Assembly: GCF_032062105.1 (NCBI RefSeq)
Contig: NW_026929514.1
Coordinates: forward strand, 1-64,000
Source of the DNA: Saccostrea cucullata
Taxonomy: Eukaryota
Length of the DNA: 64,000 nt
Direction: 5' to 3'
Part shown: in pieces, positions 1-55,800 of the stretch
Numbering within the stretch: the stretch's first letter is position 1
How the letters are laid out: each line of letters opens with the position of its first letter
Made by a program: the position numbers and the translations under genes
Notes under the pieces: model-generated
Database searches by the model: none
The model's input: the letters and a program-made list of their open reading frames with translations, nothing else
Told to the model about the DNA's origin: nothing

Positions 1-3000
1 TAGGTATCTTTCTTGCATCTCCTCCCTCAGTTTGATTTCCTTGGACAGGAGTTTTTTGTTGACGTCTTCTACTGTATCGGCCACTTTAGATGTCAGACTC
101 AGTTTTTCTGCCTGGTTGACGTGGTCTTTTTCTCTCAGTAAAATGTCCATTGCATGAATGCCCTCTTCCCTTCTTCTATTGGCGTCACTCAGTGATTGTT
201 GCAATTCATAAATTCTATAAAATGGAAAATAGATCTGTCAAGGGGAAGTACTCTTAATGAACTAAAGCCCATCTATACAATTGTTAACTTATTAATAATA
301 TTTTTTACTGACTGAAGAAAACGACAATTCAACCTAAAACTTTTATTTAACTTAATGTGATGACCTACTTTTTTGACATTTGTTGCTCCAGATTCCTCCT
401 TTCTGTGATTTCAGACTCCTGCTTTGCCCTCACGTCCACCAAGACATCTCGGAGTTCTGATAATCTACAAAAACAATTCACACAGTAATGATATAGCTGT
501 TGTATTAATTGCGGTGTGTTCCCATTTCGCCTTAACTGTGAAATTCGGGTAAGAAAAAGTTTAAAAGTACTAAGGCGAAATGGGAATTTTAGTATTTGTA
601 GATATTATCACTGGGTTGAAATAAAAATTTAAATGATAAAAAATTTTAGATTGAATTTACCAGTTAACAGGAATTCATGAATACAGTGAATGAAATAATA
701 GATGTAATACCAAGTATTTTTAAAAAAAATACTTTATACTAAATATATTAAATCTTCATCACCTTAATTCACCTGAGAGCTTACTAAGGCGAAATGGGAA
801 TGCTAAATTTTACAGTTAAGGCAAGATGGGAACAAACCTTAATTGCCACTTCTACTCTACTTTCTCAATTAAGTGGTAAAAAATTGTTCTTAATTAAGTG
901 AAACTTAAAGATTTTCACGAAATCTTTCTCATGCTTTGTTCAGAATGAAGAGGACATTATGTGTACCTGGTTTCCACCTGGCCTTTGAGTTGCGTTGTCT
1001 GTTGGTCTGTCTGTGACTGTATCGTGGATGTCTTCCTGAGAGCCTCCAGCTAAAACAGCAAACAAATAATTACCTGTTGTTTCTATTTTATCTTAGCTTT
1101 TAATTAAAATCTGAACAACAAAGAAAACAAAAAAACAGCTGAGTTAACAAATAAGAATTTTCACAAATGCAAGAAATCTTGGTCAGTTAGTACTGATTGA
1201 TAGATTCTTTTTTACTGATTGATACAAATATTGAGAAATTACTAGTACTGTCCAAACAATAAGCACAAAAGAAAATGCCCCCCTTATCCAAGCATCTCTG
1301 ATGTGCAGGATAAGGGTCATTCTATAAGGAAGCCTGACGGCTTCGAGAGTTGACATTGAATTTCTATTCTTAGTTTATCACGACAGAGCCTACTTCACAG
1401 CCGAGTGATTTTCTAAAGAAAATTCACCCGGCTATTGTCTCCTTCCATATAAAAGCCCCTGTGCCTTTCGAACGCGTTCTCTTTTTACAGTTAAGCAGAA
1501 TATTTGACATTTATTGAGAGATAATCAGGGTCGGGATCAAATACACTGCCATTAAATTATTGTAGATATATATATTAAATAGTAGACATGAGATAGGGAT
1601 GGGAAGGTCAACTCTCGAAGCCGTCAGGCTTCCTTATAGAATGACCCTTATCCTGCACATCAGAGATGCTTGGATAAGGGGGGCATTCTATTTCGTATGC
1701 CTTCTGGCATTCTCAAGTTGACATTGAATTCTTTAAAGCCTCTCAATAAATGTTAAAAATTCAGACCTTGTAAATTTATGCATAAGGAAAATTATTATCT
1801 TCTTAATCATTTGTGATTCCTCAGGTAATACCAATAGGATATAGAATCAGAACTAAAGAACACATGTTTATGAAAAACAGAAAAAAGAAAAACATAATCA
1901 ATATTTATTTTAGAAAATTAAACAATTGAAGTGTTATCATGTACATTGTTATACTTTCTTTCACAAAAATAACGTTCATAACAGTAACACTGAAAAAATC
2001 AAATCCTAGACTATTCATGTATTATGTCCATGATCACACAGTCACAGTTTCTCCTTCCTGGAAAGCACAGCGGAAGAAAATGAATTTTCATCCTGAATAT
2101 CTTTATTGTAAAATCGGTGGAAAGTGGTAGCTGAGGACCAATTCGCTGTAGAAAGTATGTCGTTTAGGGTGACCCCCGACAGGTATGCTGTTGAACATGA
2201 TGCCCCTCTGAAAGAATGTGCTTGAAATAAGGAAATATCTATACCAGAAAGTTGTAATACTCTTTTTAGCCATCTTGCTATTGAACTCGATGTTACTTGT
2301 TGGAATGTCTTAAAAGAAATCAAAAGTTGAGGAGATTTCCTTTTTTCTTTTGTTCTCTCTAAATAATGTTTTAATGTAAACACAGGACAAATGGATTTGT
2401 CGTGAAATGCATTTATTTTTATCAATGAATTCAAATTTCCCAATTTTGAGGTTTTCTGCAAGTCCTGAATAGAAAAACTTATAAAATTTTCTGTAATATT
2501 CATATTATCAACATTCATTAAACTCAGAGTCTGAGATCTTTGCGCTGAAGTCAAAGCTAATAATGCAGTAGTCTTATACGTCAGCATTTCCAATTTTAAT
2601 TCTTTTAATGGGAATTGTTTTGCTAAAAAACTCAAAACTTTTTGCACATCCCAAAATGATCTGTATTTTGGAATGGGTGGTCTGAGATTAAATATTCCTT
2701 TCATGAATCTATAGCAATGAAAGCATTATCTACAAATTTAGAATTTCCCAGGGATGCTAAAGTTTGTGAAATAGCACATTTATGTGTATTGATGCAACTG
2801 TAAGATTTATTTTCTAGACAAAGAGTTGTCAAATAATTAACAATGTTTACTTCATTTGGTGCAATGGGATCAACATTTTGTTTACTACACCAATGCATCC
2901 AAGCTTTCCATGGATATTGGTACTGTTTAGCAGTGGAGTTTCTCCACGATTTTGCCATGATTTTTGAAGCTTCTTTTGAAACTCCTTTCTTTTGGAGATA

Positions 3001-6000
3001 TCTCCGGATACACAACAACCTATCAGAAATAACTTTCTCTTGTTCATTGGGTGTAGAGCATTGTTGTGTGCTAGAGTTAACAGATCTTTCTGAAAAGGTA
3101 GCTTGACTGGAAAATCTATTAAAGCGGCTAGTAATCGGGGGAACCATGTTTGAGTCGTCCATAATGGACATACTAACAACACTCTTTTTACCTGTTCGTC
3201 CTCTATTTTCTGCAACACTTTTGCCATCTGACTGAAAGGTGAGAAAATATATGGATCAATTAGATTATTCCATGATAAAGAAAATGCATCAAATTCAATT
3301 GCATTTGGATCTGGAAACCATGACACATAATTATTAGGTAATTGTGTATTCAATCTAGATGCAAAAAGATCGATCTTAGGTTTAAAAAATCTTTTACACA
3401 GTTTTCTAAATACACCTTCATTTAACATCCACTCAGTACAATCATTAAACTCTCGTGACAAATAGTCAGGGATTTTATTATCTTTCCCTGGAATATGCAC
3501 TGCTGATATAAATATGTTTTTTCTGAAACACCAATTCCAAATATTCTTTGTCTCTTCTAAAAGTGACAAAACAGATCCCCCAATTCTATTTATATAGGCC
3601 ACTGCTGTTGCACTATCTGATTTCACACAGATATGACAATTATTGTAAAATTTACAAAGGGCAAGCAGGGAAAAATAAATTGCTCTCAACTCAAGTTTAT
3701 TTATATGCAACAAACTCTCCAAAACATCCCATCTGCCTTGTGTAGAATTTTTTGTAAAATTCCCTTCTTTAAGTATTGCTCCCCAGCCAATTAATGATGC
3801 ATCAGACTCAATGTATATCTGAGGAGCAGTTGGTCTAATTGTTTTACCATTGTAATGTTTTAAATTTTCAATCCACCAATTTATCTCACTTTTTGATTCT
3901 TGAGAAATAATCATTTTTCTATCGTAATTCTGAAAATTCTTTTCTAATGCTGTACATTTGTCCCTGTCTAAATATCTATGATACAATGGACCCAATTGTA
4001 TTGCTGTACTTGCCGAATTATATAAACCAATCAAAGCAGTAACTTCCCTAATTGAAACTTGATCTTTTCTCAGAATATCAGAAGATAGATGTAAAATCTT
4101 CTCAACTTTCTCATCAGGTAATAAAAACTTAAAACTCACAGAATTTACAATAAATCCCAAATACTGAATTTGTTGGGAAGGAAAAACCATTGATTTTTCA
4201 GAATTTATATGAAATCCTAAATCTCTGAGGGTTTTTATTAAAAATTCTGCATTTGATCTACAATTTTTTATATCCAAATCTTGATTCAATGAATCATCTA
4301 TATAATAAAAGCAACAAATTCCCATACTCCTCAAGTACGAAAACACAGGTTTCATAATTTTTGTAAAACCCTTGGAGCACTAGACAAACCAAACGGAAGA
4401 CAAGTAAATTCATATAATGTATCTCTCCAAATAAACTTGAGATATTTTCTTGAAGTATGATGAATTGGGATTGAAAAATATGCATTTTCTAAATCAACCG
4501 AAGTAAAATATGCATCTTGTTTTAGCAGTTCTGCAACATGATGTAAAGTTTCCATCTTAAAATGATGGTATTCAACAAACTCATTTAATTTCTTCAGATT
4601 AATAACAGGTCTAAATTTTCCATTCTTTTTCTTGACAAGAAAAATGTTTGAAATAAACTCATTTTCCTCATGTTGAGATTTTTCAATTGCTCCCATGCTC
4701 AGCATTTTTTCAACCTCATCATCAATCAAAGCACACTCTGTATTGTTAAAATTTGGAGTATTTGGAATACAGTTTTGAATAGGTTCTTGTTCAAATTCTA
4801 TTTTATACCCAGAAATAGTCTCTAAAATCCAATCATCATCTGTAATAAGTTTCCATATATCTACAAAATATTTTAGGCTGCCTGCCTTAAAATTAGTTAC
4901 CTCTAATTGTAGTAACTTCTGCGCAGATTTCTCCTGCCTCTTGCTCCCCGTACAAAGCTCTTGTTCTGGTCTGTACTGTAGCTGAACTGTCCTGTTCTGT
5001 ATCTCCCTCTCTGACTGTAACTCGACTGAGGGTTTGTCATCATTCTGTTGCCTCGACTTCCTCGAAAGTTTTTTGAGAAATAATTCCTATTTATTTTTTG
5101 TGCATCGTTTATGTCTTTCAATCTCTTTCCGACATCTTCAAATAACTTGTTATCCCCTATTTTTTCATTTCTATTGCAAAGCTGATGATACCTTTTGTCA
5201 ATGAACGGTTTCATTAATAATCGTCTATTTACAGAAATTTCAAAAAAGGCATTCAAAAGTACTGTTAGTGAGTCTGATATGCATTTTTTCAACTTTTTTG
5301 AATCTGGTGATTTACTTTTTAATTCCTCAGCCATTCTAATAATAGGGACAATGCCATGGCCCAACAGTTTCTGTACTGTTTGTAAACCTAAATCTTTAGA
5401 TTTTATGTTTCTATCTAAGAAATGCCAAATTTCAGAATTAACTGCAGGAGGTGACAAATCTTTACAGTTTGATGGAATTTTTAATTCTTTGACAATAGAC
5501 TTAACATCTGACTTTTTCTTCACAATTGATTGCACCATTTTAGAAATATTTTCGTTGGTTTCCTCACCAAACTTTTCATCGTCTTCAAATATTTTTGGCA
5601 TTTCGCTCAAAAAATCGTCTATCTCGTTATCATTTTCAAGGTCTTGCTGTTCATTGTCTGAAAAAATATCATGGTGAGACTCTATCTCATTTGACATGCT
5701 TTGGTCATTTTGGTCATTTTGATTTGTACATGTGGTACTAGACTTGCTTTGGTCATTACATGTATTTACAGGTGGGTTTACACTTCTATTGGTAATAGCT
5801 TCTTGAGAACTCTCATTAATTTTTCTAATAGCAAAATTTGCAGTTTCCAACACTTGGTTTAAAACTTCATCCATTTTATTTTGCCAAATAGTTTCTTTAT
5901 TTACTTTTTGTTTTTTGGGGTTTTTTCCGGTTTTAGACTGACCCGGTTTGCGTTTTCTTGTGCCTCTTGCACTTCCGGTTTGTTTATTTGTAGAATTTAC

Positions 6001-9000
6001 AGATTGAGGCAATGTCGCCAAATCATGAGATTCTGACGCCTGCTCTATAATTTCGTCAGCCAAATTTTTATCAAGTTCGAACCCCGAGAAACTGCCCTCA
6101 TCTTCAGAGGCAAATAATTGCATGATATCGTCGGCATGAGCCTGACGTGTATGTCGACCCTTCGAAGTCGAAGGTTCATCGTCTGACATGATTATCGCCA
6201 AAATAAAACGTTTCAATTAGAAACTAAACGTAAGAGCAGCAGAAATATCTGGAAAAAAACGAAAGGATGAAGTAAATTTACTTTTAATGTAAGTAGAAAC
6301 CCGAAATACAACCCGTGTCGGGTACAACTCAAGATAAAAAATCCCACCACGTGCGTGGCAAGAAAAAATAATGGTCATTCGAGTCGGATGACCACCTACC
6401 GGTTCTGTCGCCTAAGAATAAAAAGAGAACGCGTTCGAAAGGCACAGGGGCTTTTATATGGAAGGAGACAATAGCCGGGTGAATTTTCTTTAGAAAATCA
6501 CTCGGCTGTGAAGTAGGCTCTGTCGTGATAAACTAAGAATAGAAATTCAATGTCAACTTGAGAATGCCAGAAGGCATACGAAATAGAATGTGATGGCAGT
6601 ACAATATTTAATATAGTCTATGTTGTTAACTTAATCCAGTAACCTGAAAGTTAAGGAATAAAACAACACACTGCATCAGAATCCTGAAGGCTATGGTGTC
6701 ACAAAGAGATACGGGTATACAATGAAAGCTGTGAATATTGCCTTATCACATCAATACTCGATAAAACTTAAAATAAAAACACATACCCCTGCATAGATTC
6801 CTAAAAGCCCTTAAATTCTTCAAAGTGAAAGCATTATGTGCATGCATTCTCATAAATAATATTGGCAAAATTGAAGTATTAATTATACCAAAGTTGAACT
6901 CACTTTCTGTTAAAAAGAAATGAAGATTAAACTAACTTCTGCATAACTGGATGTTTACTAGGTATCTTTGATGGTTCAGATATCCATTATTAAATTTAAA
7001 AAATCACAATTTAAGCTAAAAAAAAAGGTAAACAGATAAAAAAAGAAGCTTTAAAAGCAATATAATTAAGCTTTATTTCTGCATTGCTGTTCTACAAATC
7101 TTAATCAAAATTGAGAAATCTAGAGTTATAAGTATACATTTTTTTTGGCTTATTTCATTGCTGAATATAAAAAATGTACTGCTGCAGTAATGAATTGATC
7201 TATTATTATGAATAATCAAAATATGAAAGAAAATATAGAAAGAAGGCTTGAAGAAAAATAGACTCTTTTCAAAATTGCCACTAAATCTAAAGACCTGGTA
7301 ATAAAAAAATGAAAACTCTATACAAGCTCTAGCTATTTCATTGCAAAAAGATACTCAGATTTAATACAAGTTCTTTAGTCTATCACTGGAATTATCTGTA
7401 CAGCAATTAAGTTAACAAAGATTTGATCCAACAATTTTTTTAAAAAAAGGTGAAGCATAAGGGAGACAACTTGTGTCCGACTCTCTTTTACTACAATATA
7501 ATGAGTTACCTCCTCTGCCTGTGTGCATTCAATTTTATCAAATACAAAAATTAAGTCAAGAAAACACATTAAATTTAAATCTCTTGCTGTCAACATATTA
7601 AGCTAAATAATATAATGACAAAAGCTAAGGCTTTTCACTTTTTAATAGGCACCCTTCAAACTATTGCAGTGATCAAATCTTATTTTCTTTCAATTTGGCT
7701 TCATAAGGAACAATTAAAGTACATGTACTGAAATATTTATTTCATATTTTTTGTGACTGCAGAATCCACGACAACTTGGGTGTTAAATTTAAAAGAAGAT
7801 TTAGATTTACTAGCCATTTTTATGGTGTAAAATGTGTAGAAAATTCAAAATAAAATAATTAACCCTAAAACTTATTATTACTCAGTGTATTAAAGGGAAA
7901 CTACAATAATAATGCCATATTACACATGGGTCTTATATATCCATTGCAAAGTTACTTTAAAAGTAAAAAATAATAATGAGTACATAATTTGGGAGGAAAG
8001 TCTCTAACTCAAATAATCATATACATTTGATTGAAGTACAATGTATAATGCCTAGATTATAAGACATACCCTAGATTTCAACTTTGCCTGCATAAATGCA
8101 ATTGATTGTGACTTGAATGTGCAAATAAAAATTTCATTAAAACTGTAAATATTACAGGATGGTGCAGTTATGTGCATTGAGTAATATTTTCCTCTCATTT
8201 TCTTAAAATAGAATTGTCATTTGGGGGTGAACAGAATCAGTATTATGTTTCCCTCAAAAATGAATGTCCAGTTTATATGTCAACATTAAACACAGCTAAA
8301 TAAAATGCTTTTTGATGACAACATTATCACATCTAATGAAAACTAACAAAAGAAAACAAAATTATAGACATTTTATATTTGATTTGAGTTTTTGGACTCA
8401 TTTATCAAACATTAATTCAAAAATCATTCCAAATCAATCACAATCTATATTCACATTTATGGTTATATAATCACACAATAGTAACTCTAAATACCTTCGG
8501 AACCCCTCTGTTTTTTACCTGATTTCTGTTGTCATCCTCTAGTTTTTTGGACTTGTTTCTGAGGTCTGAGGAGACTGTACCCAGTTCAGCGGACTGCTGT
8601 TCTACTTTCATTTTCAGGTTTCTGATGTCATCAGCCATGGAGAAACAAATTCGCTCAAGCTGATTCTTAGCACTTTGCAAGTCCTCCATCTCTGCTCGCA
8701 TCTCTACGAGTCTGAAAATTCACAACTTTTATAATAAATTTCACAATATACATACAATAAATATAAAATAATACTTATTATTTTGACTTTAGATCATTAT
8801 ACTTATAATAATTGCACTCTCATAAAGAAGCTTAAATTATAGGGCCAGCCTCTAAATTACAAATTACATAATTATTATCATTAAGGATTGAATATCAAAA
8901 TTTACATATTAGAAAGTCAAACTATACATTATTTTGAGCTAGATGGGATTACAAAAAAAACCTTTGAAAGAATTCGAGATATCATGGGTAAAGTAGTTAA

Positions 9001-52849: not shown

Positions 52850-55800
52850 CAAAGGGCAAGATAGCCAATGTTTTGTCAAACAAGCCACTGAAACAATTAA
52901 GTACAGATATTTTAATAGCAGATGGTACACCATTGAAAGTGTATGGTACTCAAGAAATAAAGTTTTCCACACAGGGTATGCTCTTTGAAGTTTGAACATG
53001 TTATGGTAGTTGCCGACTTAAGAGTTGGCGGAATATTAGGTTTAGATTTCCTAAGAGCTCATAAATGTTCATTAGACCTGGAGGGTTCTTCGCTGACTTT
53101 TGGTCAAGTTGGAAAGTCAGTTGCTTGTAAATACAAGGAAAAAATTGGTTGCTTCCGAGTAACACTGCGTGAAGATCTTGGGATACCACCAAAAAGTGAA
53201 GTTTTGACTTATTGTAAAGTCCATAACCTGGATAACCAAAGTGCTTCCAGTTTCTCTAAAGTAGGCTTAGTAGAACCTTGTAAGCAATTTGATGATTCTG
53301 ATAGAGCATTAGTAGCAAGAACACTTGTGACATACAACAAAGAGATCAAAGTTCCAGTGCGTCTTATAAACCTACAGAATGAGGTAATGCATTTAAGGAA
53401 AAGCACATTCATTGCTGGACTGAACTCATTCAAAATGTTTTGACAGCGACCGTGGGCAGACGGACGCCAGATTGCAAAGAATTTTTTATAATTATATATG
53501 AATTTATAAAGCGCTAAATATTAATAAATTAACTCTAAAGCGCTGTACAATAAAACGTTAGTAAACATAATTAAGAGCTATGACTACGTAAATAAAATAT
53601 TAACACATAGGCCTACTCATATATGTGTTAGAAATTATAACATTAAAATACTAATATTACATACAAAATACAATTACGCCATTAATAAAACTGTCAATAA
53701 AGGAACATCTTTTGTTATTAGCTGATTAAAGTTGTGCACCAGATAATTAAAAAGCTATTCTATAAAAATGCGTCTTTAATTGTCTTTTGAAAATGTCAAG
53801 GGACTGGGCCTATTTTATGTCATTAGGAAGGTCGTTCCACAAGAATGCTGCTGCCCAACCAAGTCGTCGTTCGCCATATGTCTTTGTCCTGATTTTAGGA
53901 ACAACTAGCCGTGATGTTGACTCAGATCGCAGTGATCTGATGGGCTTGTATTCCATTATAAGATCTTTGATATAAGATGGAGCTAACCCGTGTAAGTATT
54001 GGTAGACATATGTCAAGATTTTATATTGTGGACGAAAAAAGGGGTAGCCAATGAAGATCAGCTAGGATAGATGTAATATGCTCCCGTTTCGATGATCTTG
54101 TAACTAAACGAGCTGCTATGTTCTGGACTTTTTGAATCCGTTCTAGTATGGCCTTTGACACGCCATATAGAAGGCAGTTCCCATAGTCCAATCTGGCAGT
54201 GATAGCGGCGTTCACATTGGTCTTGCAGGCTTCTTTTTGTAAGAAAGCGCCATATATGTCCAATATTGCTTATTTGGAAATAGCATGACTTGACGACCGA
54301 GGATACCTGTTTTTTCATAGTAAGGTGTTGATCGAAAAAAAAAACACCTAGATTTTTCACACATGGCACGCTTTCAATGATATTATCACCAACTTTTAGT
54401 TGTAATTTTGGCAGATACTTCTGGTGTTGCTTTGTGGTGAAGATTAAGAACTCGGTCTTTTCTTGGTTTAGTTTGAGTAGGTTCGATGTCATCCATGAAC
54501 CAATTTCGCTAAGGCACGCTTCAAGTCGAGAGAAATAATTGTTCCAATTTTCCAGTGGTCTTATAAGTATGTAGATTTGTGTATCATCTGCATAGCAGTA
54601 ATATATCATTCCATGTCGATGGTATATAATTCCAATGGCTTTTGAGAAGAGGCAATACAATTTCGGTCCGAGTACAGATCCTTGGGGGACACCGAAAGGC
54701 AGCTGTCTAGACTCTGATCGGACGGATCCAATTGTGACACATTGTTTTCTGTTCTTGAAGTAAGACTTGATCCACTCAAGAGCACCATCACAGAATCCAT
54801 AAGACACAGTTAGGCGTTGGAACACTATTTTATGATCAATAACATCAGAAGCAGCGGATAAATCCAGAAGGACAAGGACTGCTGAAGATTGTTGGTCCAG
54901 AGCTGTCACAGTATCATTGTGGACCTTGATGAGGGCCGTTTCCGTGGAGTGCCTGGGACGATATGCCGACTGAAGTAGATCGCGAAGAGAATTCGCATCC
55001 AAGTGGGCATCAATCCTACGACCACAACTTTCTCCAATATTTTTTAGATAACCTCAAGTTTGATACGGGTCGATAGTTTTTCAACACTTCTTTTTCTAGT
55101 CCAGGTTTCTTAAGAAGTGGACGAACTATGGCCTCCTTCCAAGCGGACGGGAAAATTCCCTGATCGAGAGATGCACTTACCATGTCTGTGACAAGCGGTA
55201 TTATTGGATTCAGACACTTTTTCAGTAGCTTTGTTGGAATTGGATCCAGTTCGCATGATTTACTGGGTGCCTTCATCATTAGCGATCGTACTTCATCTTA
55301 GTGGTACGTTCAAAAGCAGCTAATAGAGGCCCATTATAGTGTATGTCTGTGTCTAAATAGCTGTCTCCTTTTTCTGTTTTTTGTTTAAGTGTCTCTCTTA
55401 AGTGTCTTTTTAGAACTGCCAGATCATTTGCAAGATTAATATGCAAGGCCAAGTACAGGTATGTCAATGGAGAACAAGCGAGCTGTACTTCAGTTACTAA
55501 TACGTTACCAGTCATCTTTTGCAAGGTCTGACCGAGATTTAGGGAAAAGCCAACATCATTAAACACAAGATTAGTACTGGAGACAACTCACCTATCAAGC
55601 AATCTCCAAGGAGAATACCCGTGCATATGCAAAAAAAGGTGGACATGCATGATGATGATATGCTACAACGGAATATCACCGAGCCTTCAAATAGTCCATG
55701 GGCGTCCAATATTCTAGTAGTGTTAGTAAAGAAGAAAGACGGCACCACCAGATTTTGTATAGATACTAGTAACAGAAAGCTCAATAAAATTACGAAGCAT

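Follow-up and report, generated by a model that had tools for sequence, protein, structure and literature searches.

Dictyostelium DIRS-1 and the short-overlap elements of mollusks are the closest described relatives of the retrotransposon analyzed here, with which they share gag, RT/RNase H and tyrosine recombinase (YR) ORFs, ITRs and an ICR (PMC3266345). DIRS1-like elements are also alike in their ATT termini, the absence of a target duplication and the short pol/YR overlap reported for Mollusca (PMC3266345). The literature searched gives no explanation of how pol, and the YR ORF that overlaps it and often has no usable start codon, are translated in DIRS1 elements. The DIRS papers PMC3266345, PMC9210276, PMC3783388 and PMC4157794, and likewise the accessible part of PMC7192593, describe neither a natural intron or splicing nor a route of YR expression, unlike what is found at the present locus. 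A sequence-only reading of this locus, which proposed a splice within the element, was aware of no such description for animal DIRS1; the DIRS literature searched, major reviews aside, indeed contains no description of natural splicing in DIRS1 elements, and an earlier remark in the Poulter and Goodwin reviews is possible. Outside this group, the plant Ty1/Copia element EVD uses splicing and early polyadenylation to make a subgenomic, Gag-only shGAG mRNA (PMC5580714).

Here we analyze a stretch of 64,000 nucleotides from Saccostrea cucullata (the window) that contains such an element, and compare its splice sites with those of related families.

The element and its surroundings

The window carries a 5.3 kb retrotransposon on its minus strand that is DIRS1-like by its RT, YR, ITR/ICR and termini (Table 1). 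The RT was confirmed by PF00078 (E 5e-11 here, 5.6e-24 in an element of a sister family). Over the YR domain PF00589 scores above the cut-off and similarity to the phrog_1 integrase covers residues 94-380; the catalytic R, K, HxxR, W and Y motifs could all be located. A search by sequence found no PDB relative of YR, and the viral contigs searched yielded nothing. The gag-like ORF1 is without a Pfam match; in other DIRS elements its homologues precede pol. In pol, RNase H matches stay below the cut-off in a Pfam search that included the sister element. The C-terminal domain of pol matches neither Pfam nor PHROG entries; its D-L-F-A and F-P-P-F motifs are conserved, and its name, putative methyltransferase, is taken from the literature.

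The ITRs, together with an ICR complementary to both ends, are those that define DIRS1 elements; at the left end, 6544-6590 is complementary to the ICR stretch 1684-1730. The ATT termini match the circle junction and lack a target duplication, in line with the NTT definition of PMC3266345. Split direct repeats, a trait of Ngaro and PAT elements, were sought as long direct repeats within the element and not found; inverted repeats are present instead. One contig of run X4 joins the two flanks directly, as expected of an empty site, and the insertion therefore looks polymorphic.

Table 1. Features of the DIRS1-like element, in window positions
Feature	Position	Strand	Basis or remark
DIRS1-like element, entire	1273..6586	-	ATT at each end; ends +/-2 nt; empty-site joint 1272|6587; terminal repeats
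Left terminus and left ITR	6410..6590	-	149 nt, 97% complementary to 1348-1496
Candidate leader intron, 151 nt	6249..6399	-	donor ranks first and acceptor second in the element; evidence weak
gag ORF, 428 aa	4903..6189	-	sister families and Mytilus have homologues
Pol frame, from the linker through RT and an RNase H-like part to a putative methyltransferase-like end	2847..5086	-	broken near 4355-4364 in the assembly
Candidate -1 slippery heptamer A_AAA_AAC, gag frame (S-K-N)	5065..5071	-	12 nt past the pol-frame opening
Intron 1, 1669 nt, GT-AG	3232..4900	-	X4 contig, 3 raw X21 reads; sister L051, L054, L055, L058
Middle exon, 40 nt	3192..3231	-	X4 record 16, X21; sister L054, L055
YR frame from the intron-1 acceptor	2042..3231	-	PF00589; broken near 2704-2711
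Intron 2, 984 nt, GT-AG	2208..3191	-	joint 2207|3192 in X4 and X21
Internal poly(A) signal AATAAA (1909-1904) and cleavage near 1891	1891..1909	-	upstream of the ICR
ICR with circle junction	1604..1730	-	repeat analysis
Right ITR and right extension	1273..1496	-	repeat analysis

Two frame breaks in the assembled copy, one in RT and one in YR, had escaped the sequence-only reading. RNA contigs carry indel differences at both (4364 in RT, 2710 in YR), and the breaks are therefore assembly errors or belong to a broken allele. In the unbroken sister element the YR frame, counted from the acceptor of intron 1, comprises 394 aa. The candidate leader intron has its donor/acceptor pair kept in the sister family. 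One X2 contig ends in a loose end of 6-7 nt that matches the upstream exon; an X1 contig retains the intron, as do those contigs of the sister family that span it.

Short host-exon-like stretches follow an AG at about 1049-968, 456-372 and 213-1 on the minus strand, the first of which also ends at GT; the element may therefore lie inside an intron of a host gene, in the sense direction. Elsewhere in the window, an exon with PF02906 (iron-only hydrogenase-like) at 33206-33607 on the minus strand probably belongs to a NARF/CIAO3-type host gene. A stretch at 25019-25477 on the plus strand, which has no Pfam match, resembles a WD40 exon of the GRWD1 type. There are also a LINE-type RT fragment (54058-55002, minus strand, PF00078), a possible LTR-element fragment (52985-53443, plus strand) and a tandemly repetitive ORF (23544-24137, plus strand).

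Further copies related to the element were seen in the genome (G000). Two short elements, C12350:539-1051 and C1538:14753-15264, consist mostly of the termini of the window's DIRS family and are possible non-autonomous derivatives. Degenerate relatives (76-90%) on C5014, C8159, C1518 and C22107 are split by insertions of 0.8-1.4 kb, and the insertion in the C5014 relative adjoins the gag stop and donor. A Logan contig of 995 nt encodes a protein of 278 aa (P0049), the first 142 residues of which are the catalytic part of the sister YR, followed by an unrelated tail (PF20719); it is a possible chimera with host sequence.

Two introns in the RNA

The sequence-only reading had proposed an intron of 1669 nt inside pol, with a donor GAG|GTAACT starting at 4900 in phase 0 of the pol frame and an acceptor ...TTTTCTCACCTTTCAG| ending at 3232. 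From the next base, 3231, which is in phase 0 of the YR frame, 20 open codons were said to lead into the YR ORF, the ATG of which is at 3171. Coordinates and phases proved correct at both sites. The gag stop TAG occupies 4905-4903 and is followed by AG, so that the donor begins 2 nt after the stop; the acceptor sits within the F-S-P-F-S codons. Scored with rough home-made weight matrices, whose ranks are by themselves no proof of use, the donor is second of the 243 GT sites in the element and the acceptor sixth of 343 AG sites. A CTAAT branch-like site had been pointed out as well. Its A does lie 29 nt upstream of the acceptor, but the motif is missing from the sister family, where a TTGAT at about -24 is kept.

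Intron 1 is real and confirmed by RNA; its excision takes most of the RT gene out of some transcripts of the element. The predicted joint, 3231|4901 (CT..AC on the plus strand), occurs in two separate studies: in a contig of depth 8 from X4, a run that we guess to be RNA, and in three raw reads with three different starts from the poly(A) run X21. Four runs were mapped to 1150-6850, among which X21 gave only 28 reads, and the shorter side of either joint measures at most 40 nt in X21. Contigs from X1 and X2 run through the splice sites unspliced. The sister family (80-86% nucleotide identity; Logan contigs, with library types taken as they come) has intron 1 removed at the same bases in contigs of four runs, two of which (L054, L055) have both introns removed, and seven of its contigs are unspliced. 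The junction reads that the sequence-only reading had named as a check thus exist in the element's own family and in its sister.

A second intron, absent from that reading, lies within the YR frame. It has the donor CAG|GTAAAA and an acceptor within the H-S-F-R codons, and its excision deletes most of YR, out of frame. The joint that marks its removal occurs in the same X4 contig as 3231|4901. In another X4 contig, 3191 runs back to 2231 with 3 letters between, which is consistent with a lariat of intron 2 branched at A2228 in CTTAT; no lariat of intron 1 was seen. The lariat-like piece (2228-3191, minus strand) reaches depth 11 in X4, compared with depth 8 for the spliced mRNA contig, and the excised intron-2 RNA is possibly stable.

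A non-templated T8 tail closes the doubly spliced X4 contig at 1891, 13 nt past AATAAA and upstream of the ICR, and in the sister family contigs L055 and L076 stop at the corresponding position. Genomic copies with the intron precisely deleted were not found among the best 40 candidates in each of three families, the spliced model being searched exon by exon; this fits polyadenylation before the ICR. All RNA pieces that extend beyond the middle exon are doubly spliced and code for Gag only. No read or contig lacks intron 1 while keeping intron 2, either in the four runs, where read depth was very low (28 reads in X21), or among the sister-family contigs. Look-ups with the YR and gag proteins, made to find a singly spliced contig, returned contigs that were unspliced, doubly spliced or ended too early.

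Taken by themselves, these RNAs and the early poly(A) site speak for a splice whose sole purpose is a short and abundant gag mRNA comparable to shGAG in Ty1/Copia, with the join to YR incidental and YR made otherwise. The position of the junctions points the same way. Junction-triggered mRNA decay follows an established rule of 50-55 nt, and the doubly spliced mRNA has its junctions 2 and 42 nt past the gag stop. Such distances, which recur in the donors of 43 of 46 families (within about 50 nt past the gag stop), would fit a Gag mRNA that escapes this decay. What such a purpose leaves unaccounted for becomes apparent from the comparison of families.

Conservation across DIRS families

We compared 105 elements in 71 families, defined at <80% nucleotide identity: 21 from the S. 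cucullata genome, the sister element, one element of Mytilus californianus, two copies with a YR that groups with an Acropora protein, and 80 loci of animal hosts taken from metagenomes. The families, arranged in a FastTree phylogeny, share ancestry, and the counts that follow are not independent of each other. RNA confirmation covers the window's family and its sister. The Mytilus element has the same layout as the one studied here.

Across families, a phase-0 donor is found about 2-50 nt past the gag stop. The best donor near this stop is in phase 0 in 44 of 46 families, a phase partly forced by the open pol frame. It is strong in 36/46, compared with 36/1040 background windows, in which phase 1 dominates; when 400 nt are scanned, 43/46 families have it from -4 to +50 relative to the gag stop. 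As an observation in its own right, the donors within 50 nt past the stop in the set of 46 families match the distance rule for escape from junction-triggered decay.

At the acceptor, the serine of FPPF-X is encoded by AGY in 43 of 47 cases, against 23.5% elsewhere in pol. YR coding gives AGY no advantage at this place, because the YR frame reads T-AG as a stop; 8 families have a YR frame that starts directly after that TAG. Of the 44 families that have the acceptor AG, 42 show an open YR frame at the acceptor. Where the AG is lost or bypassed, candidate phase-0 acceptors appear in separate clades at +9/12, +129, +135/138, +165 and +210/213, at or shortly past the last YR-frame stop. The top acceptors are in phase 0 in 39/46 families (11/48 in the background); one family, L132, has no phase-0 acceptor, and three (L036, L037, L085) have weak scores. 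The donor is thus kept, the serine is AGY and not TCN, and the phases are compatible, all of which the sequence-only reading had asked of related families. Judged by its sites, intron 1 is conserved family-wide.

The second intron is distributed differently. A strong second donor is present in only 8 of 42 families, and removal of intron 1 alone would therefore leave YR whole in most of them. The second donor at +40 is common to the window's family, L038 and the Mytilus element, which form one clade.

Families with a long overlap, in which the YR frame reaches back to gag, have the acceptor AG in 0/8 and a strong donor in 0/6 testable cases, a group that amounts to only 2 changes on the tree. 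Of the five that have a heptamer, four (L039, L096, L113, L129) show a YR frame without a stop for 748-967 codons, counted from the slip site. This suggests a splice-free route to Gag-YR in these families, by a -2 or +1 shift at that same site.

A splice made for Gag alone would predict no constraint on phase, yet acceptors are in phase 0 at five offsets, with the YR frame becoming open at them or just upstream. Nor would it explain why long-overlap families lost both sites, and families with a late AUG would be left without a route to the full YR. In 19 families the first YR AUG lies at least 200 nt downstream of the acceptor and in 11 more than 300 nt, the latter AUGs lying past the start of integrase similarity. 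We therefore regard a purpose limited to Gag mRNA as improbable.

The distance to the AUG also bears on how a singly spliced RNA would be read. Such an RNA could be bicistronic, with reinitiation at the YR AUG at 3171, 62 nt past the gag stop, giving free YR with no frameshift. In this element the AUG follows 20 codons past the acceptor, and it lies within 120 nt in 21 of 42 families; the spacing from gag stop to YR AUG resembles that between ORF1 and ORF2 of L1. But in 19 of the 42 families the first 200 nt contain no AUG, many of the early AUGs appear on inspection of the sequence to be by-products of pol P-x-W codons, and here a pol-frame AUG is closer, 6 nt past the stop. Reinitiation, moreover, requires neither phase 0 nor a frame that is open from the acceptor, and we give it little credence.

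Probable frameshifting and the proposed route to YR

The reading that we prefer over both combines the splice with a frameshift. The first ATG of the pol frame is at 4705 and the frame is open from 5086, so that Pol most likely needs a -1 slip at the heptamer at 5071-5065, a site that the sequence-only reading had not noted. A slippery heptamer precedes the gag stop in 42 of 46 families, compared with 38 of 397 background windows (~10%), and it is from this conservation that we infer the -1 frameshift. Downstream of the slip site of this element no stable RNA structure is predicted (z = 0.06, simple structures only), a weak point of the model; over 47 families the structure signal is modest (mean z -1.25). 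With the junction only 2 nt past the gag stop, a Gag-YR fusion needs a prior -1 slip.

YR might instead be reached by another path: an env-like splice from the leader donor at 6399 to the YR acceptor, or a second -1 slip from pol into YR. The leader donor is the strongest of the element, and YR does lie in the -1 frame of pol, the arrangement for which Poulter and Butler proposed a frameshift in Ngaro, as quoted in PMC13003380. However, no 6399-3232 joint occurs in the four runs, and the pol/YR overlap contains no slippery heptamer here, nor in 17 of the 21 elements checked. Either path seems to us very improbable.

We consider it probable that frameshifting and splicing act together, the unspliced RNA giving Gag and Gag-Pol, one splice giving Gag and Gag-YR, and the doubly spliced RNA of this clade being a Gag-only mRNA. 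Starting from a single promoter, the element would combine -1 ribosomal frameshifting with alternative splicing. On unspliced RNA, most ribosomes would end at the gag stop and make Gag (428 aa), and a minority would slip -1 at A_AAA_AAC and continue through a 55-codon linker into RT/RNase H. Once intron 1 is removed, the same slip would take ribosomes along the linker, beyond the gag stop and over the junction in frame into YR, for a fusion of about 375+55+394 = 824 aa. As part of Gag-YR, the recombinase would be packaged together with particle and cDNA. Intron 2 can be removed as well in this clade, which leaves a short gag-only mRNA with its poly(A) before the ICR, unfit as a replication template.

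A switch between Gag, Gag-Pol and Gag-YR had already been put forward by the sequence-only reading. Its splice stands, through the junction reads, the conserved donor, the AGY serine and the phases; its products are less directly attested, as neither the singly spliced RNA nor the Gag-YR protein was seen, and we call the fusion likely on the grounds of sequence conservation.

Extended to the short-overlap animal DIRS1 elements (about 60 of the 71 families), the proposal becomes that Gag-YR, made by frameshift and splicing, keeps the FPPFS acceptor in place over deep time, and that long-overlap elements reach the same fusion without splicing, with the YR frame extended to the slip site (-2 or +1). 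This wider form we favour cautiously. If it is true, long versus short ORF overlaps in DIRS, a long-known puzzle, would be accounted for.

The exact sites, the RNA proof of the intron and the family-wide rule offer a testable answer to the question of how YR is produced. The model predicts that the true YR protein is fused to Gag, which bears on attempts to reconstitute DIRS integration, and annotations of DIRS elements that show YR as a free ORF would need revision if Gag-YR is true. For the protein motif FPPFS, it means that the codons are constrained by splicing.

Comparison with known systems

Ngaro elements are like the present one in that YR lies in the -1 frame and overlaps the end of pol. 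They differ in their split direct repeats, in contrast to the ITRs and ICR found here. The pol-to-YR frameshift proposed for Ngaro YR, as quoted in PMC13003380, has no corresponding slippery site in this element.

The doubly spliced DIRS RNA works like the shGAG RNA of Ty1/Copia, in which splicing of the gag-pol RNA centres on the protease domain and yields only Gag (PMC5580714). In the DIRS element, by contrast, gag is closed by a stop codon of its own, and an in-frame connection to YR, dependent on the frameshift, is preserved by the first splice.

Retroviruses make Gag-Pol by -1 frameshifting and use spliced subgenomic mRNAs for env and, in foamy viruses, for pol. They resemble this element in the slippery heptamer near the end of gag and in splicing to a downstream ORF. 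In retroviruses, however, splicing and frameshifting serve separate mRNAs, whereas in this element a single frameshift would lead into two alternative enzyme tails, the choice between them being made by splicing, and the acceptor is placed in the codons of a conserved motif.
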